From sequence record NC_049851.1: a DNA stretch of 64,000 nt. One strand, given 5' to 3'. The position numbers and the translations under genes are program-made. The notes beneath the pieces were generated by a model. The model made no database searches and was not told the origin of the DNA. It saw only the letters and a program-made list of their open reading frames with translations. This document shows, in pieces, positions 47,749 through 58,616 of the stretch. Positions within the stretch are counted from its first letter, which is position 1. The number at the start of each line of letters is the position of its first letter.

Positions 47749-49656
47749 TTATTTACTAGACTCCTTTTCGGCGCGTGCCCGGGCCAGAGCCTGAATTTCT
47801 GCGACCTGCGCGAGCGCCGTGTCCGCAGTCTCTGCATCACCTTTCTGCTTGGCACGTGTCGCCTTCACCCGCAACTTGTTGATCAGCGTCGACTCGTCCT
47901 TAGTGAGTTCAAGTTTCACGCGTTTCTTCGGAGCTTCGGCCTGCACGACCTCCCGCTGAGCCTGCTTGAATTTGTTGTAGTTCCACATCATGTACTCACC
48001 GCGATTGATCATGGCCTGATGCATGAGCGTCGGCGCATGGTTGTAGCGATGGTGCAGCTTTTCTGCCAGACCAAGTGTCGGGACGATGGCCAGCATCGGG
48101 CTCTCGCTGTCGTGATCACGAATGTTTCCACGACCTAGACACTGGATTGCGCGGTCCACCACATAGTCCTCGTCCGGATCGTAGCCCGGCGTACCATCCT
48201 CGTGAGGACGGCCCAACAGGAACTGAAGCAGTCGACCAAGTTGGGGCCACGGGTTGATGGCCGCGTGAAAGACCACGGCATTACAGCCCATGTACTTGTT
48301 GATACCGGGCGCGCGAGCGTGCGACATAAAGCGCATCATCTTGCGGTTGTACTCGTACTTTTCACGATGGCTCTCGTTGATGAAGAGCAGAGCCTTGTTC
48401 TCGCGTCCGTGTTTTGCGCGCCACTGGCGAAGTACGGACTCCGATTGATCAAGCAACCACTCCATGATGTCGATGTGTGCGTGCGCATTCTCCGTGATGT
48501 AACGCACGATGTCACGATCCTCCTGCTTCGTGTCACCGTAGAACTCGGGATCACGATGACGACCGACCGCACGCTGGATGTCAGTCGTGTTGAGGCCAGT
48601 ACGCTGCATCCAGTTCCCGAGTTTCGTGATCTGGTCCTTCGGCAGAATGAACCCGAAGTCGTACTGACGGATGGCGGGGACGCGAGAGTCACGGAGCAGC
48701 GGCACGATCACCAACTTCTCGTAGCGCCGGGCAATCCGCTCCATCGACGCCGTGTACCCAAGCTTCGTGTACTCGTTGAGGAACTGTCGGCTCACGTCGT
48801 TGAGGATCGCGTCTTCCCACTTCAGCAGGTGGTACATCTGCGAGTTCGTGAAGTCGGCGGCCATGATGTATACGTGCCGGAATCCGACGAACGGAAACGA
48901 GGGAAGCGAAATCTGAATCATCTTGCGCGCACTACCCTTACCCTCGAACAATCCATACGCACGCGTACGCGCAACACCGTCCTTCGTCGAGAGCGATGCG
49001 TGCAGATCGTCAAGCACAGCAAACTGCCGGGCCGCCGCCTTGCCGTTCAGCTTCGTGACCTTCTGGTTCTCTGGTATGTCGCGCGGGACCAGCGTACTGA
49101 TACCAGATGCCTCGTCCCCATCGAGTATAAGTGGATTGATGTCGAACAGGCGCTCCATGTAATTCTGGGTGTCGGCGTCCAGCTTGATCTTCTCCACGAT
49201 CTCGGCCCACTTACGGGCTTCATCGAAAATGACAGTGGTGTGCCGGAACATCGGGCTGGACTGTAGAGATAGGAAGCCTGCGTGGGTCATGAACAGAACG
49301 CACCCCGGGGTGAATGCGCGTGATTGCTTACCGTCGTTAGTGAATCCGTTCAGGATGTTAACGATTTGGTGCATGACGGATGTACTTGAATTGGCGCGCG
49401 CGTTATCACGCGAGTATGCGATACGAAGCATGAACCGCTCGCCCGGCGTGAGACCGGCCCGCAGTCGACGGTAAGTTTGACGAAGAAGCTGTCGAGAGGA
49501 CGCGACATAGAAAACGTAACGCGACTTACCACGCTCACCGTTGAGCCAAGTGCGGACGTGACGAGCCATGAACTCGCAAGCGGCCTCGGTCTTGCCGGTG
49601 CCGGGCGGTGCGTCCACGTAATTGATGATCAGCGGTGATTTCGATTCTTCCATCAT
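47749..49656 (-). CDS. P-loop helicase-like protein
   Basis: Walker A DAPPGTGKT, Walker B VIFDEA, C-terminal QCLGRGNIR motif-VI-like. Confidence 0.7.
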   Translation of the reverse strand: MMEESKSPLIINYVDAPPGTGKTEAACEFMARHVRTWLNGERGKSRYVFYVASSRQLLRQTYRRLRAGLTPGERFMLRIAYSRDNARANSSTSVMHQIVNILNGFTNDGKQSRAFTPGCVLFMTHAGFLSLQSSPMFRHTTVIFDEARKWAEIVEKIKLDADTQNYMERLFDINPLILDGDEASGISTLVPRDIPENQKVTKLNGKAAARQFAVLDDLHASLSTKDGVARTRAYGLFEGKGSARKMIQISLPSFPFVGFRHVYIMAADFTNSQMYHLLKWEDAILNDVSRQFLNEYTKLGYTASMERIARRYEKLVIVPLLRDSRVPAIRQYDFGFILPKDQITKLGNWMQRTGLNTTDIQRAVGRHRDPEFYGDTKQEDRDIVRYITENAHAHIDIMEWLLDQSESVLRQWRAKHGRENKALLFINESHREKYEYNRKMMRFMSHARAPGINKYMGCNAVVFHAAINPWPQLGRLLQFLLGRPHEDGTPGYDPDEDYVVDRAIQCLGRGNIRDHDSESPMLAIVPTLGLAEKLHHRYNHAPTLMHQAMINRGEYMMWNYNKFKQAQREVVQAEAPKKRVKLELTKDESTLINKLRVKATRAKQKGDAETADTALAQVAEIQALARARAEKESSK

Positions 49657-50340
49657 GGTCGGTCGGTCGTCGGTTCCTGTAATTGATCTTGGGGGTCACC
49701 TGTATGGGACCCATTGGTAATTTATTTACTGCACTCAGTTCATCACACGAGTGTAACAGTTTTTGGTTTCACGATCAAGCCCTCGACCACGAGTGGGCGC
49801 AGCCCCGAGTGGGCAGCGTGGAGCGCGAGCGACACGCATTCCCAAACCGTCAAGCATCCAAGCTGTTGAGCACGCTGAGGGTCAGGGGAGCATGGATCGC
49901 TGCGCTCTCCATGCGAACCGCGTGCTGCGCACGGGTTTTTCCTTCCTGAAGAGAAGAAAAGGCTATGTAATTGAAAAGTCATAGCATCCATATAGATAGT
50001 ACGGCCGGGGCAGACTTTCAATTACATGGATCGGGACCAAAACGAGCCAAAAATCGCAGTTTTTCGCTACTTTCCTGACTTTTGTCGATTTTTCACACTT
50101 TTCTTCATTAAAAACACGTGTAATCAGGGCTTGACAGCGGCCGTATGTCCCATATACATTACGCGCACGCTATATCGCGCAATATGACGCGCGCCCAACA
50201 GGAGGATATGATGCACTATGACGAACATTACGCGCGTGCTGGCCGGTCGGCATAAGCTCGCAAGACCGATAAATAAAGGTCGCATCATGTTGACCCAGTT
50301 CGACGTTCCGTGTTAGCATCTGTTCATCACTGACAACCCG
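49657..50340. other. AT-rich divergent intergenic region
   Basis: No credible ORF; T-rich tract 50060-50115; promoter-like TTGACA-18-TACATT at 50131-50160 (+). Confidence 0.6.
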
Positions 50341-50351
50341 AGAGGTGCAAC

Positions 50352-51738
50352 ATGAAAAACAAACTGCAACGTCTTCCGTGTATCGTGTCGATCAAGAACG
50401 AGGGCAAGTACGCAACGCTCTCGCTCATCACTGGCAAAGACAAGTTCGAGGTCATGGTCGATCCGAAGGCGCTCGGTCAACTGCTGATGGGCACGAACCT
50501 GCTCACGTACACGCAACACACGAAAATCTAAGGAGGTGGCTCAATGGCTACGAAAACTGGTTCGCGCTCTGCACTCCTGCCGTCCGTGACGCAGACACCG
50601 GCTCCCAAGAAGCCGAAGTTGAGGACCCCGGTCTACGTCGACCGCGAGAACCGCGTGCTCACCGTCGACTCGCGCGTCAAGACCTACCTGCGTCCGCTGT
50701 CCAAAGGCATCAGCGAAAAGGGCACGGTCGTCGCCATCGACGAGCGCGGTCTCTCGGTCAAGATCGACGGCGTGCGTGAGGTTCGCGAGTACACGGTCGA
50801 GGAAGCGGCCGAGAAGCTGATCTTCACGGGCATGAAAAAGAAGAAAGTTCGTTACGCGGAAGATTGCTCGACCGACGAGCGTGCCCGGGCATCCGTCGAG
50901 ATCGGGCGCTCCGGAATTCTGGTCGATCTGTATCTCGACGACCGGTCTGTGACGATTAATATCGAGCCTGAGCACGTTATGCGCGCGCTCGAAGGTCGTC
51001 CCCTAGGCGGGGTGATCCCGCAAGCACGCGCTCGTGTTCGCACCTACTCGGCGGTCTCGGAATGAGCACGCGTAGCAACAAGAAGATGAGTCGTGGCCTC
51101 AACGGGGAAGTAATCGATCACAAGCGTTACATCAAGACTTACCGCTATCAGGTGATGCGGGTCATTCGCGACATCGAGAACGGGAGCGTGAACGAAGAGG
51201 ACATGGCAAAGCTTCGCAACTTTTGTCAAATGTCGATCACGTTGATGGAACACGCGCCGATTTCGCAAATTCAGGCAGCGTGGCGCGACACCGAGATCAT
51301 GGCGTTCGCGCACGATGCAGTTGACGACGTGCAGGACACCGGTGTAGTATTGCGCGGTCCCGATCAACCGGCTCGGTCAGGCTGCATCCCCGAGTCCTTT
51401 CGCAAGGAGTGAACATGGAGAACGAACAACGCGTTGAGTTTGTCGAAGACTGGGCATCGGTGCTTCCCGAGCGCATTCGCAACCATAACAAGGACACCAT
51501 CGATAAAATCTCGATGGTGCTCGACGACGACAGTGTGTATGCGAAGCTGCACATTCCGATGAAGGAAGGTGAGTACGTGCAGGAGGTGGATGTCACGCAC
51601 CTGCATCCCGAACTTCGTGCGCGTCTCGCGCTCTCCCTGTTTCGTGACGCACTGGAACTCACGCGCAAGGCCCGACGTGAAGGCCGCCGTCAAGTCCGCA
51701 AGCTCATCAACGAAGCACTCAACCCCATGTACGACTAA
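50352..51738 (+). other. small early-type ORFs 50352-50531, 50544-51065, 51062-51412, 51409-51738
   Basis: RBSs GAGG/AGGAGG; coupled starts and stops. Confidence 0.6.
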
Positions 51739-51749
51739 GGCAGGAAACC

Positions 51750-51896
51750 ATGGAAGATCAACCCATCAAACTCACGGAAGCTGAGACCGAACGCTTCCTC
51801 GAAACACTGAAATCGCCGCCCCCGCCGAACGCGGCACTCGTCGAGGCGATGCGCAAATACCGGGAACAGGAGGAAGCAAGTGGCCGAAATCAATAA
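51750..51896 (+). CDS. 48-aa DUF1778 (AtaR/TacA antitoxin) C-terminal-like peptide, absent from the ORF track
   Basis: MEDQPIKLTEAETERFLETLKSPPPPNAALVEAMRKY...; RBS AGGAAA. Confidence 0.65.
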   Translation: MEDQPIKLTEAETERFLETLKSPPPPNAALVEAMRKYREQEEASGRNQ

Positions 51897-52125
51897 CGAC
51901 CGCTACATGATCTATCAGGACAGCGACACGGACTACTGGCTCGCGTACATAAAGCTGGGCCCGGACCCGGGCATCACGGTCAACGTCACGCACGTGCCTG
52001 AGCCCAATCGCGAGACCTTCGTGAAGCTGCTGCGTGATCAGATCATCCGGGCCGCAGAATCCGCGTTCAAGCGCGGGTCCTATGACGCAAAACTTGGAGT
52101 GCGTATGGCGCTCCGACTCGACTAA
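51880..52125 (+). CDS. hypothetical protein
   Basis: GTG start behind GGAGG. Confidence 0.6.
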   Translation: MAEINNDRYMIYQDSDTDYWLAYIKLGPDPGITVNVTHVPEPNRETFVKLLRDQIIRAAESAFKRGSYDAKLGVRMALRLD

Positions 52126-52134
52126 GGAGGACGC

Positions 52135-52413
52135 ATGAAAAAGTTTATCGCACTGGCGGTCGTCGCCGTCACCCTCGCTGGGTGCGGCCCGGAGCCCGAC
52201 ACCCCGCTCGGCGGTGTCCAATACACAGAAGGTCGCTTCCAAGTCGCACGCGTCGGCGTCTTCCGCGACGAACTCGCGTACGGTGACAAGCGCGGCATCT
52301 ACACGTTCGTCGACACGAAGACAGGCAAGGAGTACGTCGGTGTCTCGGGCATCGGCATCGCGGAGACGGGTTCGCACTCCAGCGGCAAGACCCAGACGCA
52401 GGACGAGCGATGA
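52135..52413 (+). CDS. lipoprotein
   Basis: MKKFIALAVVAVTLAG|C lipobox. Confidence 0.75.
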   Translation: MKKFIALAVVAVTLAGCGPEPDTPLGGVQYTEGRFQVARVGVFRDELAYGDKRGIYTFVDTKTGKEYVGVSGIGIAETGSHSSGKTQTQDER

Positions 52414-53483
52414 GCGCTACTCCACTCTTTCTCGACGACGCTCCGCACCTGACGCCACTCGGTTTCGCAAATCGTCTCTACGTCGATAGCGTCCAGCACT
52501 CGATGCTGCGCCTGAATCGCGAGCGTACTGCCTACCATGATATGCCCGTCTACGGTGTGGATGAGGTTCAGAAACTTCTGCGCTACGCACAGGAAATGCG
52601 TGATCTGGCGGACCGTTTGCAGAGTGGGCGCTGATGCCGATCTACAGAGAAGGTATCGATCTTGACCAGTATGTCTCGACTTGGGACGAACCGGACAGCG
52701 TTGAGGGTTTAGGCTACTGCTACCGATACACGGACGTGAAGTACAGTCCGGGTGTAGACGAGTGGGATGATCCGCTTCCACGCTCGCCCGGGACCCACTT
52801 GGGCATTCACGTGCACGAATACAAGGTGCTGCGTGAAACCAAGTGCGGCTTCTGGTTCTACGACACTTACGAGGGCCGTGAGCGCTTCATCAACAACTCG
52901 TGGACCAAGAAGCATGCGCTCCGTTCGAAGGAAGCGGCACGCGATTCGTATATCGCGCGCAAGGAAAAGCAGATCACGCTGCTCAAGCGTCAGATAATCG
53001 ACGCCGAAGAGTTCTTGCGCATGGCCCGTGACCAACAAGCGCGCGGCGTCGCCCAATCTATCTGGAGGTAACATGGGTCTGGAATACTACGCACTGAACC
53101 ACGCACGCGCCGAAGCCGTGTCGTTGGGTCGCCTCGGCTTTCGCTTCGACGCGTTGCTGAACGTGACGGACCAAGCGGAGTTCGAGCGTGCGTGTTTCGA
53201 ATCGCTGGTCGCGTCCGGTTTCGACTATGCACGCGCTGCCGAGTTCGCACACGACTTCTACGATTTCGGGGCCGACGAAATATGGAACGACGGACAGGAC
53301 GTGTACGAATATTTCTCGTGCTACCGCGTGGTCGACGCGCTCGACCACGAAGAGATCGGGAGCAAGCTCGGTGACTACTTCGTGCGGTCCGGTATGCTTC
53401 CGGTCGAGGCCCTGAGTCTGCGTCACCCGCGCGTGCAGATTGTGCTGGGCCGAGCCAAGATCACGCAACCCAATTTGAATTGA
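52410..53483 (+). other. hypothetical ORFs 52410-52634, 52634-53071, 53073-53483
   Basis: Coupled ORFs with RBSs. Confidence 0.6.
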
Positions 53484-53487
53484 CCTG

Positions 53488-53516
53488 TTGACGGTGTAGT
53501 AAAGACAGCGTATAGT
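53488..53516 (+). promoter_or_regulatory. composite promoter for the tRNA cluster
   Basis: TTGACG-17-TATAGT with GTAGTAAAGA inside the spacer. Confidence 0.75.
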
Positions 53517-53525
53517 TCAGGACTC

Positions 53526-53602
53526 GGGCGGTTAGCTCAGGGGTTAGCAGCGTTCGGCTCATAACCGAGGGGTCGCGGGTTCGAATCCCGCACCGCCCAC
53601 CA
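53526..53602 (+). tRNA. tRNA-CAU (Met, or Ile2 if lysidine-modified)
   Basis: Cloverleaf; TTCGG-CT-CAT-AA-CCGAG; TTCGAAT; encoded CCA. Confidence 0.9.
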
Positions 53603-53658
53603 CACAGAATAGGAGGCAATCATGAGTAGATTCTAGTGAACCAACTGGAGGTGTTCTC

Positions 53659-53946
53659 ATGAAAGCAAAAGCGTTTTACCATCGTGTTTGTAACTACGGC
53701 CCGGGCGGCTACCACTGCCCGTGCTGTGGTCCCGCACCGAGCATGCGTCGTAAGGAGCGTCAGCAACAACGACGCAAGTTCCATCGACTGCTTGACGTTC
53801 TGGACAAGTTTGACACCGAAGTCGAAATCGAATACGACAACCTCGTGCTCAACGATTTCGACGACGAGCGTCACGACTACTACAACGGCTGGGGCGGTGA
53901 TCCCAGCCTGCACGATGAGTGGAAGGATTGGAAGAAGGCAGCTTGA
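53659..53946 (+). CDS. hypothetical protein with CPCC motif
   Basis: RBS GGAGG. Confidence 0.6.
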   Translation: MKAKAFYHRVCNYGPGGYHCPCCGPAPSMRRKERQQQRRKFHRLLDVLDKFDTEVEIEYDNLVLNDFDDERHDYYNGWGGDPSLHDEWKDWKKAA

Positions 53947-54010
53947 CCGTACTGCACCGCAAAGCCTTAGATGCGGTGTGCCGCGAGAACGTGAGCGGTG
54001 CAGTGCACCT

Positions 54011-54096
54011 GCCCGGGTGGCGGAATTGCTAGACGCGACGGACTCAAAATCCGTTGGCCCTAGGCCGTGTGGGTTGGAGTCCCACCCCGGGCACCA
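54011..54096 (+). tRNA. tRNA-Leu(CAA) with C19/G56 elbow
   Basis: ACGGA-CT-CAA-AA-TCCGT, long variable arm, CCA. Confidence 0.9.
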
Positions 54097-54098
54097 TC

Positions 54099-54137
54099 GC
54101 GAGGGTGGCGAAATTGGTAGACGTGGCGAAATTGGTA
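54099..54137 (+). pseudogene. 5' fragment of a tRNA-Leu with a 15-nt direct duplication
   Basis: GCGAGGG-TG-GCGAAATTGGTAGACG; GTGGCGAAATTGGTA at 54105-54119 and 54123-54137. Confidence 0.8.
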
Positions 54138-54177
54138 ATCCCCAATTTTATTTCAGTAACCAACGTGGAGAAGATTC

Positions 54178-54888
54178 ATGCTAGAACTGAAAAACGACAT
54201 GCCGATTTTGGCCAAGAAGTTGTCCGGTGTGTATGGTCACGAGATTCGTATCATCGGGCCGTACGTGGACAAGAGAAACGGGCGTAAGCTCGTGGACATA
54301 AAGGGTGCGCCCCGTTCCTCGGGAATTAACAAAACCGTGCAGCTTGCACGTGCGCGCCTAGAAGTAAAGCTTGGTCGACGCCTTGTCGATGACGAGACTG
54401 TCGACCACAAGAACAACGATTGCACGGATGACCGTCCGAGCAATCTTCAGTTGCTGACGCACGCAGAGAACTCGGCAAAGCAGACGAAGGAAACGCGTAG
54501 TCGCTCGGCTGAAGCGTCTCGCACCGCCGAGGCGCGTTCCGCTAACAGCAAACGCAATACAGGTGAGAAGAATCAAGCTGCCGTCCTTACCGATACTGAA
54601 GTGAAAAGGTTTCGCACACTTTTCAGTAAGGGTAAAATGACGGTCAAGCAAATCGAAGATGCGTCGGAGTTGACAAATCGTTCGGTTCGTAATATGCTTG
54701 ACGGCCTGTCGTACAAAACGGCAGGCGGACCGCTCCGCATAGCAGGCTCTGTTGGTCGCGCATCCTCGTTGTCAGAGAAGCACAGGCAGTACATAGCGAA
54801 TCACGCAGAACTGTCAGCCGCGCAGATTGCAGAAGAACTTGACGTGAGTAGGTATGCAGTGATACGATACCGACGCACGCTTAACTAA
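54178..54888 (+). mobile_element. HNH homing endonuclease
   Basis: LARARLEVKLGR.L...ETVDHKNND.TDDRPSNLQLLT.AEN plus a C-terminal HTH-like region. Confidence 0.85.
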
Positions 54889-54889
54889 C

Positions 54890-54976
54890 GGGAGTGTGCT
54901 GGAATTGGTAGACGGAACGGATTTAGATTCCGTAGGCCGCAAGGTCGTGTGGGTTCGAATCCCATCACTCCCACCA
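54890..54976 (+). tRNA. tRNA-Leu(TAG)
   Basis: ACGGA-TT-TAG-AT-TCCGT, variable arm, CCA. Confidence 0.92.
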
Positions 54977-55006
54977 CTACACGAAATTTTAGTTAAAGGT
55001 ATTTAA

Positions 55007-55246
55007 GTGCCGCCAAGCATCGAACAGGTAAAACTTATACTCAGATCAGCAGCATTGTCTCCGAGCAGCAGTCAGTTGTCTATTTCTGGCTTTGACGATA
55101 TCATGAAGGCAGCAGAGGAAGCCTATTGTGGAGATAGCCGAGCCATGCTCACAAACGTCCGGGAAATTGCCTTGCAGTTTCCGGACAATACGATGATGAT
55201 GACGATTTTGGCGCTGTATTCTGAATCCATGCTGAGTATGCATTAA
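55007..55246 (+). CDS. hypothetical protein (79 aa)
   Basis: GTG-start ORF, lower GC than the flanks. Confidence 0.45.
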   Translation: MPPSIEQVKLILRSAALSPSSSQLSISGFDDIMKAAEEAYCGDSRAMLTNVREIALQFPDNTMMMTILALYSESMLSMH

Positions 55247-55260
55247 GCGCAATCCCCACA

Positions 55261-55310
55261 GTCCTGCCGGTCGAAAGGCCGTGAGGGTTCGAATCCCTTT
55301 CCTCGCACCA
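55261..55310 (+). pseudogene. 3' fragment of a tRNA-Leu
   Basis: GT-CCTGC-C-GGTC-GAAA-GGCC-GT-GAGGG-TTCGAAT-CCCTT-TCCTCGC-ACCA; TCCTCGC pairs with GCGAGGG at 54099. Confidence 0.85.
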
Positions 55311-55404
55311 CTTTGGATTGTAGGCGTAAATCGAGCGGGACTTCCCCACCCACTCGATTAGGTATGGTACACCTTATAGACCGTCGCCTACAATCCAAAG
55401 TGGT
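55307..55404 (+). ncRNA. unknown structured RNA, 20-bp perfect closing stem
   Basis: ACCACTTTGGATTGTAGGCG (55307-55326) / CGCCTACAATCCAAAGTGGT (55385-55404), internal hairpin AATCGAG/CTCGATT. Confidence 0.55.
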
Positions 55405-55477
55405 TGTGGTAAAGATGTAGTGTGCTTTGCCTTTGAAGCGCGGGCGCTGTGGTTCTCAGGCCACGACAGCGCCCAAC

Positions 55478-55553
55478 GCCGGTTTAGCTCAGTTGGTAGA
55501 GCAGCGCCCTTGTAAAGCGCAGGTCACGGGTTCGAGCCCTGTAACCGGCACCA
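55478..55553 (+). tRNA. tRNA-Thr(TGT)
   Basis: GCGCC-CT-TGT-AA-AGCGC; CCA. Confidence 0.92.
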
Positions 55554-55574
55554 CTAAACAATAACAACGAGGTT

Positions 55575-56138
55575 GTGATGAATACGCATGAGGCTTACGA
55601 GATCGTCGATAGACTGACGCCGGTATCGGTCAGGAACCTCGAAGACGCGTACGTACGGTTCATGGAAATGGCGCTTCTGGTCGATCCACACCCGGAGACT
55701 GAAGACCGGGCCACACGGGATCGTGAGACATACACTGAATTCCTGCTACCGCCCGACGAGAACGGCAATCCCGTGATTTCGGTCCCGGGCATGCACCAGT
55801 TTCTGTCCAAGATCACGGGCCATCCACTACAAACCTGCGTAGCCTTCGACTATGTTGACTTCCATCGCGTGCACGGCACGACGGTAGAGGACGCGGAACT
55901 CGCTGGCTACGTTTAAGGACGGACCATGGAAGAAGACGCATACAGGTTCAGTGTGGCAGCGCTCAAAAGCGAGTACGACGCTGAACTGCTCGAACTGCGC
56001 AAGACAGTGCTTGAAGGTCGCGGTGACGTTGCTGGGTTTATCAAACTCAAGGAGTCGCTTGACTCAAGGCTGAAGGACCGCGTTAGCGCGGTTACTGGCG
56101 CACGCAGTCAAACACAGAACAAGTTGCTGTACAACTGA
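55575..56138 (+). other. hypothetical ORFs 55575-55916 and 55926-56138
   Basis: ORF track, RBSs. Confidence 0.6.
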
Positions 56139-56144
56139 ACAAGA

Positions 56145-56221
56145 CTCCGCTTAGCTCAGCCCGGTAGAGTACGTGATTTGGGATCACGGGGTCGCAGGTT
56201 CAAATCCTGTAGCGGAGACCA
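56145..56221 (+). tRNA. tRNA-Pro(TGG)
   Basis: CGTGA-TT-TGG-GA-TCACG; C1:G72, A73, CCA. Confidence 0.92.
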
Positions 56222-56239
56222 CACAACATAGGAGGTGTC

Positions 56240-57512
56240 TTGGAAACCACTTACGACTACAGCCTTACGTTCGACCTGACTGACATCATCGTGTTCGTTC
56301 TGATCGCGATCATGATCAAGATGGTCATCGACATCGTGCGTGAGCGCATGCGAATACGCAGGCTCCGACGCGACATGGGGGCAAACGGCAATCTTCCGTG
56401 CATCACGATCTCGGGTAACGACGATGTGTCGATCTCGGGTCTTGTGTACGAAGGGCGGCCCATCCCCTCGGTCGATATCAAGAACAAAGCGCTGTTCGTC
56501 GACGGTCAGTTCAAGCGCCGCCTCGCCCGCAACAGCCGTGTCTACAACCGTGGCATCGGAATCTTCGCGGACGGCAAGTACATGGGGTAATACCATGCGC
56601 AGTATCTTTCACATTTCGGTCGGCTCCGATAACTGGAACCCGACCGAGGACGAACTTGCGGGCATCGTCCGCAAGTTCAAAGAACTGGAAGCAAAGCAGG
56701 GTCAGCGTCAACAGCTTCCCGATACCCGCAAGATCATCCACATCAGTGTGGGTGCTGAGGATTGGACGCCTACCGCAGACGAACTGTTGGCCATCGTCAA
56801 TCAGTTCCAGTATGCAGACCTCGATCCGCTCGGTGGGTGGATTGCGACGCGTCACGGTATCAAAGTCACTGACATCGAGACCGCCGCACAGCCCACGCTG
56901 GTGGTGAACGGCACGACCCACGAAAGCGAGGCTCGTGCTTCGCTACGTCAGGACTCCATCGACCGGCTTGAGGCCATCCGCGAAAACCTGCGTACGTTCA
57001 AGCTGAGCACGCTCGATGTCGACACACTGATCAATCGGTTGTCGACGTATCAACTTTAACCGAAAAGCTTAGGACAACAAATGAAACAACTCAACACGCA
57101 ACGCCGCTTCGAATGCCTGACACCGGAAGGTACATGGGTCTCCGTGCACTGGGAGCAACTGGAACCGGGCGACATGATCCGCCTCCTGCCCGCTGTCGGC
57201 ATCACCGAGGACGTTCCGCCGACCGACGTATTCGTCGTCATGGACACGCCTACCGTGAACGTGCGTTCGGTGAACGAAATCCGTGCCGAACAAGCAGCCG
57301 CAGCGCAGCGTGAAGCGCTGGCCAACACGGAAGGTGTCGATGCTATCCAAGCAGCGCAGCGCGATATCGACGCAGCCGTCGAGCAGATGAAGCCGGTAAC
57401 AGAGGCCGTGGCAAAGGTGGCGCACGCAGTAAAGGCCAAGAAGACGCCGAGCCCGAAGGTTCCGGCACCGGCACGCAAGCCGCGCACGCGCAAGGTCGCG
57501 ACGCCGAAGTAA
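56240..57512 (+). other. hypothetical ORFs 56240-56590 (N-terminal TM), 56595-57059 (internal repeat), 57081-57512 (basic tail)
   Basis: ORF track, RBSs. Confidence 0.6.
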
Positions 57513-57624
57513 TGGCCGTGTAGTAAATAGGTTGGGTGAGCGCGGAAACGCAATCCCCAATTTGAGTTGTACAGAAAACTAGTGCTGGTTGCCGGATGCA
57601 GTTGTTACCCGGAACAGCACACGC

Positions 57625-57714
57625 GGATGGGTGCCCGAGTGGCTAAAGGGGGCAGACTGTAAATCTGCCGGGCCTCAGTGTCCTACGTTGGTTCGAATCC
57701 AACCTCATCCACCA
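57625..57714 (+). tRNA. tRNA-Tyr(GTA)
   Basis: GCAGA-CT-GTA-AA-TCTGC, long variable arm, CCA. Confidence 0.92.
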
Positions 57715-57767
57715 GAACATAAGCAGGAGCCCTGAGCATCAGGGCATCAGGGCAACAAGGAAAAGCA

Positions 57768-58049
57768 ATGCCGATTAAGCCGCTGTATGACAAGGTGGTG
57801 GTGCGTACCACCGACACAGACCGTACGACTGTAGGGGGCATCGTGATCCCCGCTGCTTCGCTCAAGGCGAATCAGGCTGTCGTGGTCGCTGTCGGTGACG
57901 GCCACCTTATGCAAGACGGTACGCTTCGACCGCTGTCCGTGAAGGCAGGCGACGTTGTGTACCTCTCGCATGAAGGCTCCGAGATCGAAGTCAACGGTGA
58001 AAAGCTTCGCGTCTTCATCGAAGGCGATCTGATAGGAGTCCTCAACTAA
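57768..58049 (+). CDS. groES: co-chaperonin GroES
   Basis: IKPLYDKVVV, GGIVIP, VVAVGDG, VKAGDVV, GSEIEVNGE. Confidence 0.92.
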   Translation: MPIKPLYDKVVVRTTDTDRTTVGGIVIPAASLKANQAVVVAVGDGHLMQDGTLRPLSVKAGDVVYLSHEGSEIEVNGEKLRVFIEGDLIGVLN

Positions 58050-58058
58050 GCAGTACAT

Positions 58059-58135
58059 TCCCCGTGAGCAAGCTAGGCGACTGCACCGGACTGTTAATCC
58101 GGCATTGCGTGGTTCGAATCCACGACGGGGAGCCA
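58059..58135 (+). tRNA. tRNA-Asn(GTT)
   Basis: CCGGA-CT-GTT-AA-TCCGG; CCA. Confidence 0.92.
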
Positions 58136-58139
58136 ATCA

Positions 58140-58242
58140 TGAATAGGTCATGAGTAAGGCAGATCACTCAATCCGGAAACTCAAAAGGTAATCCGGGTAG
58201 CAATGAGCATCCTGTAAGCCGAGACGATGATTGACTTATTCA
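58140..58242 (+). ncRNA. unknown structured spacer RNA
   Basis: Closing stem TGAATAGGTCA/TGACTTATTCA with internal hairpins TGAGT/ACTCA and CCGGA/TCCGG. Confidence 0.45.
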
Positions 58243-58244
58243 GA

Positions 58245-58320
58245 GCGCGGGTAGCTCAGTTGGTAGAGCACCGGACTGAAAATCCGGGTGTCGCTGGTTC
58301 GAGTCCAGCCCTGCGCACCA
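58245..58320 (+). tRNA. tRNA-Phe(GAA)
   Basis: CCGGA-CT-GAA-AA-TCCGG; CCA. Confidence 0.93.
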
Positions 58321-58322
58321 GC

Positions 58323-58438
58323 GTTGTGATCGAGTGAAAATCGTAGGAAGGGGCCGATTACCCTGACCGCAATCTGTAGGTGGACCGGCTGGCCCTCATC
58401 CTGCTAGTGTAGATTTTTCCCATGTGGTTTCGATCAAC
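58323..58438 (+). ncRNA. unknown rod-like RNA
   Basis: Nested stems TGATCGA/TCGATCA, GAAAATC/GATTTT, GTAGGA/TCCTGC, GGGGCC/GGCCCT separated by bulges. Confidence 0.45.
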
Positions 58439-58539
58439 TAATCATTGTGTGGTTGTAGCGCACTAAATCAGACGGCCGGGCTCCGGAGCCCGCGTACCAT
58501 ACCACCCCGGATGGAAACCGTTGAATATTCCGGGTCGAT

Positions 58540-58616
58540 AGGGGTGTAGCCAAGTTGGTTAAGGCAACGGATTTTGATTCCGTCATGCGTAGGTTCGAAT
58601 CCTACCGCCCCTTCCA
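58540..58616 (+). tRNA. tRNA-Gln(TTG)
   Basis: ACGGA-TT-TTG-AT-TCCGT; discriminator T; CCA. Confidence 0.9.

Follow-up and report, generated by a model that had tools for sequence, protein, structure and literature searches.

BcepSauron_198 is an open reading frame (ORF) of 48 amino acids at positions 51750–51896 on the + strand of the window, the 64,000-nucleotide stretch of sequence record NC_049851.1 that we analyzed. The DNA is that of Burkholderia phage BcepSauron (MK552141.1, 262,653 bp; Sarumanvirus, Caudoviricetes), a lytic jumbo phage with the host Burkholderia cenocepacia; positions 49700–54000 match its record with 100% identity. Positions are those of the window unless stated otherwise, and adding 62,000 converts them to the record coordinates of MK552141.1. 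The encoded peptide is a stand-alone homolog of the C-terminal toxin-binding segment of DUF1778 antitoxins, whose partners are GNAT toxins. According to the ORF listing and the sequence itself, the gene runs over 48 codons from an ATG to a TAA stop. A Shine-Dalgarno-like purine run (AAGG/AGGA) precedes the ATG at 51737–51745 (+), and extension of the frame upstream is blocked by the stop codon of the preceding gene at 51736–51738. A sequence-only reading of this DNA had claimed a short unannotated ORF at these positions. The ORF is real, and the residues quoted for it correspond to residues 5–37 of BcepSauron_198. It is, however, not unannotated, as the coding sequence exists in GenBank (QBQ74578.1, “hypothetical protein”). 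The ortholog in the sister phage BcepSaruman (BcepSaruman_199) is annotated in GenBank as well, and its UniRef name is “DUF1778 domain-containing.”

The peptide matches the Pfam family PF08681 (TacA1/DUF1778) with 26.3 bits, above the gathering cut-off of 21 (E value 7.3e-6). The match places residues 3–38 on positions 44–79 of the 80-position profile, i.e., on its C-terminal half only. A comparison by hhalign with eight full-length antitoxins gave a probability of 98.9%, an E value of 1.6e-17, and 54% identity over profile columns 53–91 of 98; for four of the eight, an overlapping GNAT gene was verified. Both results bear out the likeness to the toxin-neutralizing C-terminus of AtaR, TacA, and KacA which the sequence-only reading had pointed out, and the first of them is the PF08681 search that it had proposed as a check. 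Because of the Pfam score above the gathering value and the hhalign E value, we judge the homology to the DUF1778 toxin-binding segment to be solid and beyond chance at the level of sequence.

A HMMER search of 1.84 billion representative sequences yielded 45 matches at E ≤ 0.001. The family alignment comprises 25 sequences, and conservation counts given below refer to its 22 rows from outside Sarumanvirus. In this alignment, the peptide runs without gaps along the last ~40 residues of proteins of 90–98 amino acids that carry a ribbon-helix-helix (RHH) domain, and it is 41–56% identical to the C-terminal region of full-length DUF1778 members. With the family profile as the query against the Protein Data Bank (PDB), we found 7zg5_C (E 1.3e-9), the AtaR entries 6ajm, 6gto, and 6gts (2e-9), a 46-residue AtaR fragment (6gtq_C, 8e-9), a 36-residue TacA3 peptide (7ak9_C, 4e-8), KacA (5zgn, 4e-8), and 1y9b, all aligned via their C-terminal parts. 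The single-sequence search of the PDB gave DUF1778 chains weakly (E 0.07–0.13), and nothing in the PHROGs, NCBIfam, and PADLOC libraries was matched by the peptide. A likeness to the three-helix bundle of staphylococcal protein A was rejected as an artefact. These top phmmer matches (E 3e-10) add up tandem repeats that score 9.5 bits apiece, and against the three-sequence profile each repeat scores ~4 bits.

AlphaFold2, run with the family alignment, predicts the peptide with a mean predicted local distance difference test (pLDDT) score of 91.3. Residues 1–9 are extended, followed by a helix (10–21), a linker (22–27), and a second helix (28–45). KacA wraps KacT with strand betaB (52–56), helix alphaC (57–70), a four-residue proline linker (71–74), and helix alphaD (75–86) (PMC6698736), and the predicted layout of the peptide is the same. 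Residues 6–8 (51765–51773, +) form the short extended segment ahead of helix 1 and are equivalent to betaB. Here, 16 of the 22 rows have I6 and 20 have L8. Residues 10–21 (51777–51812, +) are the alphaC equivalent with a block pLDDT of 97, and F16 and L20 are conserved in 20 and 19 rows, respectively. Residues 22–27 (51813–51830, +) form the proline-rich linker, equivalent to KacA 71–74. This is the most conserved part, with P23 in all 22 rows, P24 and P26 in 21 each, and N27 in 20. Residues 28–45 (51831–51884, +) form helix 2, the alphaD equivalent, in which L30 (18 rows) and A33 (21 rows) are conserved.

Five of the eight matches listed by Foldseek for the peptide model are toxin-bound antitoxin C-termini (7ak9_C, 6gtr_C, 6ajm_C, 6gts_C, and 5zgn_B). 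The best is 7ak9_C with a root mean square deviation (rmsd) of 1.7 Å and 43% identity; 6gtr_C has TM-scores of 0.59/0.68. On the laboratory antitoxin fragments, the model superimposes with an rmsd of 1.7–2.5 Å. Entry 7AK9 contains a 36-residue TacA3 peptide with TacT3, and 6GTQ/6GTR contain a 46-residue AtaR fragment (40 residues modeled) with AtaT. The titles of 7AK9 and 6GTR show that the C-terminal fragment of an antitoxin binds its toxin on its own. KacT is still neutralized by KacA after removal of the 10 N-terminal residues of the antitoxin (PMC6698736).

The RHH half is absent from BcepSauron_198, as the sequence-only reading had stated. Only 5 residues stand ahead of the strand, compared with 51–59 in full-length DUF1778 members, and the frame is closed upstream by the stop at 51736–51738. 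The upstream gene gp197 (51415–51738, +) matches no Pfam family and is neither an RHH half nor a toxin. The idea of a split gene with a detached RHH in gp197 was rejected, as hhalign against the full-length antitoxins gave a probability of 0.07%. Downstream, gp199 (51880–52125, +; GTG start) overlaps the peptide ORF by 17 nucleotides and is not a GNAT toxin (no GNAT Pfam match; hhalign 0.7%).

The absence of a toxin gene, which had been claimed for the adjacent genes, extends to the whole 262.6-kb BcepSauron genome. We searched it with four GNAT-toxin probes (from a metagenomic genome, B. savannae, Cupriavidus, and B. cenocepacia) and with a hidden Markov model (HMM) built from three of them. 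No GNAT toxin was found; the best tblastn match had an E value of 0.19 and the best HMM score was 5.8 bits. For comparison, the first three probes, which are 35–49% identical to each other, retrieve one another with E values of 1e-27 to 1e-47. Two weak probe matches within the window were discarded, as they fall on the strand opposite to annotated coding sequences. Outside the window, BcepSauron_100 (gp100; MK552141.1 57657–58655, −) is labeled “acetyltransferase” and was considered as a partner. It was rejected, as sequence searches of Pfam and the PDB gave no sign of a GNAT domain. The sole match of gp100 is phrog_671 (“nucleotide pyrophosphohydrolase”), and the label looks unsupported by sequence.

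The peptide gene is present in three phage sequences: BcepSauron, BcepSaruman (85% amino acid identity), and a 1.1-kb Logan contig (SRR25068138) in which the flanking genes are the same as in BcepSauron. A profile search of the sequence collection with these three Sarumanvirus sequences returned BcepSauron itself only. BcepSaruman is ~90% identical to BcepSauron at the nucleotide level over 49700–54000. Across the three sequences, residues 1–36 are nearly invariant and residues 37–48 are variable. This tail (51858–51893, +) overlaps the start of the next gene and has a mean pLDDT of 74. The peptides of BcepSauron and BcepSaruman differ in 11 codons, 4 synonymous and 7 non-synonymous. Residues 1–36 hold all 4 synonymous and 3 non-synonymous differences, and the tail holds the other 4 of the 7. 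The Logan contig has a deletion of 9 nucleotides in the tail, in frame. The Shine-Dalgarno sequence is found in all three, stronger in BcepSaruman and identical in the Logan contig. Because residues 1–36 are nearly invariant, the tail indel is in frame, and the Shine-Dalgarno sequence is conserved, the gene is evidently being kept.

Similar peptides occur elsewhere. Among the 45 HMMER representatives, 25 have a length of 46–81 amino acids, about 8 have the size of full-length DUF1778 proteins, and 4 are tandem forms with two or three copies of the motif and no RHH; the remaining ones are fusions or low-complexity proteins. The short forms have 5–27 residues before the strand vs 51–59 in full-length proteins. 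P0008 (48 amino acids) lies on a 45.7-kb contig amid phage MazG, HNH, and phosphohydrolase genes. P0015 (50 amino acids) lies in a lambdoid replication region with an O-like initiator, DUF551, RusA, and YqaJ. P0022 (63 amino acids; L016:6001-6192) is flanked by two phage RNA polymerase (RNAP) beta genes (PHROG E values 5e-181 and 2e-173) on a 98-kb phiKZ-like contig, on which a Macro-domain gene is also nearby. P0042 and P0054 (58 amino acids; L029:3655-5498 and L031:1793-2315) keep the same position between a YAcAr-domain gene and a phage type II topoisomerase gene, overlapping both. P0027 is located immediately 3′ of a DNA methyltransferase gene. P0020 (L011:880-1223) is immediately 3′ of, and overlaps, a RelB-family antitoxin gene on a 1.4-kb contig with no toxin called nearby, and the two may form a small cluster of orphan antitoxins. 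The tandem P0011 (two copies; L033:4001-4426) is part of a conjugative element with a TrwC relaxase, next to a RelE/helix-turn-helix pair. P0012 and P0004 lie at a contig end or on a very short contig and give no usable context. In none of the resolved contexts of short and tandem forms is a GNAT gene a neighbor. Toxin-less forms that lack an RHH thus recur in no fewer than four unrelated phage backbones besides that of BcepSauron, and one conjugative element carries a tandem form.

The core identity among short forms is 43.7%, and that between short and full-length forms is also 43.7%. Because these values are equal, the short forms do not appear to make up a single lineage in the sequence comparison. 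The tandem proteins without an RHH are P0004 (L009:279-683; 57 bits in three stretches), P0006, P0010, and P0011, and they may be multivalent antidotes. The C-terminal motif was also seen in fusions, namely with a DUF2283 domain (P0028), a 400-residue region (P0043), and a non-RHH N-terminus (P0037). Because the segment is joined to such varied N-terminal parts, the sequences suggest that it moves as a module. In 50,697 records of cultured phages, the only stand-alone relatives that the metagenomic short forms match are those of BcepSauron and BcepSaruman (E 6e-5 to 1e-3). The next matches are full-length antitoxins beside KacT-type genes in P1-like phages. Weak tblastn matches to proteins of Ralstonia phage RSF1 and of Alishewanella phages were dismissed as chance, as they gave no PF08681 signal and the Alishewanella protein is H-NS-like.

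Candidate targets exist in the host genus. A B. cenocepacia GNAT toxin has been characterized and acetylates Gly-tRNA(Gly) almost exclusively (PMC9177977). On a B. cenocepacia replicon (L034:929-1689), we found a PF08681 antitoxin of 91 amino acids (84 bits) overlapping a GNAT gene of 162 amino acids. Homologs of the B. savannae toxin are present in 161 plasmid records, among which Burkholderia is the top genus (47 of 161). When plasmids were searched with the peptide by tblastn, all 10 matches fell inside genes annotated as DUF1778; the best was from Cupriavidus (53% identity, E 2e-3), and B. savannae and Mycetohabitans were also among them. Going by these gene pairs, target modules are present in the genus, including B. 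cenocepacia.

BcepSauron_198 is the fifth of ten small, tightly packed rightward genes (gp194–203; 50352–53483, + strand, GenBank table). We found no convincing + strand terminator within this array. A leftward array (gp110–193, 1–49656) meets the rightward array, which runs from 50352 onward, at a divergent intergenic region of ~700 bp (49657–50351). Judged from gene orientation, this region is the probable transcription switch point of the genome. Six sigma70-like promoter matches were found in 49500–54200, where 1.8 would be expected for the whole stretch, and four of them lie at 49971–50319 (+) in the divergent region before the array. These are consensus matches only, and the cluster would fit early transcription of the array by the host polymerase.

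Two genes 3′ of the peptide, gp200 (52135–52413) has a lipoprotein signal (LPAM_1, E 0.0015) and a match to phrog_16585 (E 5e-14). Its N-terminal signal region, and only this region, matches Cor superinfection-exclusion proteins weakly, and gp200 possibly functions as a lipoprotein of exclusion. Nine tRNA genes (Met, Leu ×2, Thr, Pro, Tyr, Asn, Phe, and Gln) follow directly after the array at 53526–58616. Phages are known to counter tRNA-directed defenses with tRNAs of their own, and the proximity of these genes to the peptide array may be non-accidental. Among them, at 54178–54888 and ~1 kb around, lie the endonuclease gene gp205 and gp206, both of which BcepSaruman lacks at this place. From this comparison, the pair looks like a homing-endonuclease insertion. 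An antisense ORF of 201 amino acids (51772–52377, −) overlaps the peptide gene and its neighbors. It has no GenBank annotation and is most likely an artefact of the high G+C content.

We propose that the peptide is an orphan antidote without repressor activity, directed against GNAT toxins of the host or of its mobile elements, and we give this a probability of roughly 55%. The free-standing copy of the antitoxin part, i.e., strand, helix, proline linker, and helix, would fold onto a GNAT toxin that acetylates aminoacyl-tRNAs. During infection, the peptide would bind such a toxin encoded by the Burkholderia host, a plasmid, or a prophage. It would occupy the groove of the cognate antitoxin and the toxin would stay inactive. 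The peptide would act once host gene expression is shut off and fresh copies of the labile host antitoxin are no longer made. As an RHH domain for dimerization on DNA or for repression of the toxin-antitoxin (TA) operon is missing, the peptide would be a pure antidote. That the peptide is produced, at what time, that it binds, which toxin it binds, and that the phage benefits is what we infer here. The sequence-only reading had likewise called it an early anti-defense protein against GNAT toxins. The structural half of that claim (homology, no RHH, no toxin) holds and is strengthened by the recurrence in other phages, and the functional half stands as a proposal.

Several observations weigh against this proposal. 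The Foldseek E values are non-significant for so short a model, and the 11 codons that differ between BcepSauron and BcepSaruman are too few to measure selection (the ratio of non-synonymous to synonymous substitution rates). The only transcriptome available, that of a related phage, missed the early phase. Substitution of R77 in KacA with alanine abolishes neutralization (PMC6698736), and the position inferred to be equivalent, with the proline linker setting the register, is Ala-29 in the peptide. Alanine is found at this position in 16 of the 25 sequences, and 4 of the 5 full-length relatives are among them. Because it is the majority state even in full-length relatives, Ala-29 is, from the alignment, to be read as a trait of the subfamily rather than as a defect. 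As for the target, the sole B. cenocepacia antitoxin compared (L034) is 32% identical in the family-anchored alignment and has a different linker, and default BLASTP gave no alignment between it and the peptide. Identity is higher to the antitoxins of Cupriavidus (46–53%) and B. savannae (41%), and the closest relatives are from a Cupriavidus plasmid and from metagenomes. GNAT antitoxins are mostly cognate-specific, as no cross-talk was seen among three Salmonella TacAT pairs; a single non-cognate rescue is described in Klebsiella, with antitoxins 34% identical (PMC9431474), and a helix of the toxin is reported to determine the specificity of pairing. Finally, a full-text literature search gave no report of phage restriction by a GNAT-DUF1778 module, an absence which is not proof, and PADLOC has no model matching such modules.

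The same binding could serve another purpose, namely anti-addiction against modules of plasmids, prophages, or rival phages, i.e., competition between mobile elements and not escape from host abortive infection. GNAT-DUF1778 pairs are common on conjugative and mobilizable plasmids (117 of 161 matches, with Burkholderia as the top genus), complete KacT-type pairs are present on P1-like plasmid-prophages, and the tandem RHH-less P0011 is part of a conjugative element next to another TA pair. Orphan antitoxins are enriched in plasmid leading regions, where they are proposed to act against competing elements (PMC11541004), and a role of GNAT modules in phage defense is not on record in the literature searched. 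A strictly lytic jumbo phage, however, has no obvious gain from plasmid curing, and the distinction from defense may be semantic, as any toxin freed by host shut-off harms the phage. We hold this purpose to be rather unlikely. The peptide might also be the leftover of a captured TA module which lost the toxin and the RHH and now drifts without function. This would agree with the existence of three close sequences only, with substitutions too few to show purifying selection, with the variable C-terminal tail, and with the lack of a PHROG family. But the start of the ORF coincides with the domain boundary, the ORF has an ATG and a Shine-Dalgarno sequence of its own inside an operon-like array, residues 1–36 hold all nearly invariant family positions, the indel is in frame, and no trace of an RHH or a toxin is nearby. 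Moreover, forms with the same boundary recur in unrelated phage backbones, and because they are as distant from each other (43.7%) as from full-length proteins (43.7%), they point to repeated selection of the same piece. A drifting remnant is, hence, an unlikely account.

A partner within the phage was considered as well, whereby the peptide would bind a phage-encoded protein of the GNAT fold and regulate it or help to assemble it in the manner of chimallin. The C-terminal domain of chimallin has a GNAT fold nearest to AtaT, and its CTS1 segment binds as AtaR does (PMC9365700). The position of P0022 amid RNAP beta genes of a phiKZ-like phage would suit this idea, and BcepSauron itself has gp100 (“acetyltransferase”) and a Mom-like DNA-modification gene. 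Yet the group of BcepSauron is reported to be very distant from nucleus-forming phages, gp100 has no GNAT signal, sequence probes detected no toxin-type GNAT in the genome, and the peptide is also found in lambdoid and other small phages; such a partner is improbable. That the ORF is no gene at all, or that its resemblance is due to chance, we consider very improbable. The ORF is very short, the antisense ORF overlaps it, and its single-sequence PDB matches are weak. On the other hand, it scores above the Pfam gathering threshold and has the hhalign E value of 1.6e-17, the metagenomic short forms match it reciprocally among the cultured-phage records, it is conserved with an in-frame indel, and it was annotated independently in two GenBank records.

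The antidote proposal can be compared with several known systems. The peptide is like the DUF1778/PF08681 antitoxins TacA, AtaR, and KacA in the sequence and predicted fold of the toxin-binding C-terminal region. It is unlike them in that the N-terminal RHH is missing, that no GNAT gene is paired with it, and that it is carried by a lytic jumbo phage; full-length relatives have their GNAT pair wherever this was verified. For KacAT, a repressor complex of the A4T2 type is described (PMC6698736). As the peptide has neither an RHH nor a paired GNAT gene, it should be capable neither of operon autoregulation nor of an A4T2-type complex. The laboratory fragments of TacA3 (7AK9) and AtaR (6GTQ/6GTR) cover the same segment with 36–46 residues vs 48. 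These are, however, man-made truncations of cognate antitoxins, whereas the peptide is encoded by a gene found in nature, which has a start codon and a ribosome-binding site of its own.

Orphan antitoxins are established as counter-defense (PMC11825919), and they are abundant in plasmid leading regions (PMC11541004). Examples from phages are Dmd of T4, which acts against RnlA/LsoA, and the NADAR-type AdfN, which acts against DarT1 (PMC11825919); in chimalliviruses, a DarG2-like protein is described as counter-defense (PMC13309987). In each case, as proposed here, the phage has the antidote without the poison. AdfN is, like our peptide, homologous to a cellular antitoxin. AdfN and the DarG-like proteins are enzymes which undo damage, whereas here only the intrinsically disordered binding segment of a binding-type (type II) antitoxin is left. 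The toxin family that the peptide would target has no documented role in phage defense. Dmd is not known to be homologous to cellular antitoxins. The orphan antitoxins of plasmid leading regions are likewise toxin-less genes on a mobile element, proposed to act against TA modules of the host or of rivals. The examples given there, such as hipB, are full-length antitoxins, and a C-terminal-only DUF1778 form is not described in the part of that source available to us (PMC11541004). No phage-borne DUF1778 antitoxin that consists of the binding segment alone is described in the literature searched.

Few type II TA modules are as widespread as GNAT-DUF1778 pairs, which have been studied mainly for persistence and whose role is debated. 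Where a mobile element keeps the antidote only, this indirectly indicates that the poison is of consequence to the element. We tentatively suggest, as a possible but more doubtful extension of the antidote proposal, that the RHH-less DUF1778 peptides are a recurrent and undescribed class of minimal antidotes across unrelated phages and conjugative elements, which would mark GNAT modules as a real barrier to the spread of phages and plasmids. Within this class, tandem copies of two or three could cover several toxins. Finding type II orphan antitoxins by bioinformatics is described as difficult (PMC11825919). As seen here, such antitoxins can be recognized as half-domain matches in phage genomes. 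If several phage lineages do retain the toxin-binding segment for this purpose, GNAT toxins would join the tRNA-directed barriers to phage growth, and the peptide would be a minimal inhibitor of natural origin that does not repress and whose rules of specificity could be deduced from its sequence. The GNAT family of TA modules would then have a role as a barrier to phages and plasmids which has so far not been assigned to it.

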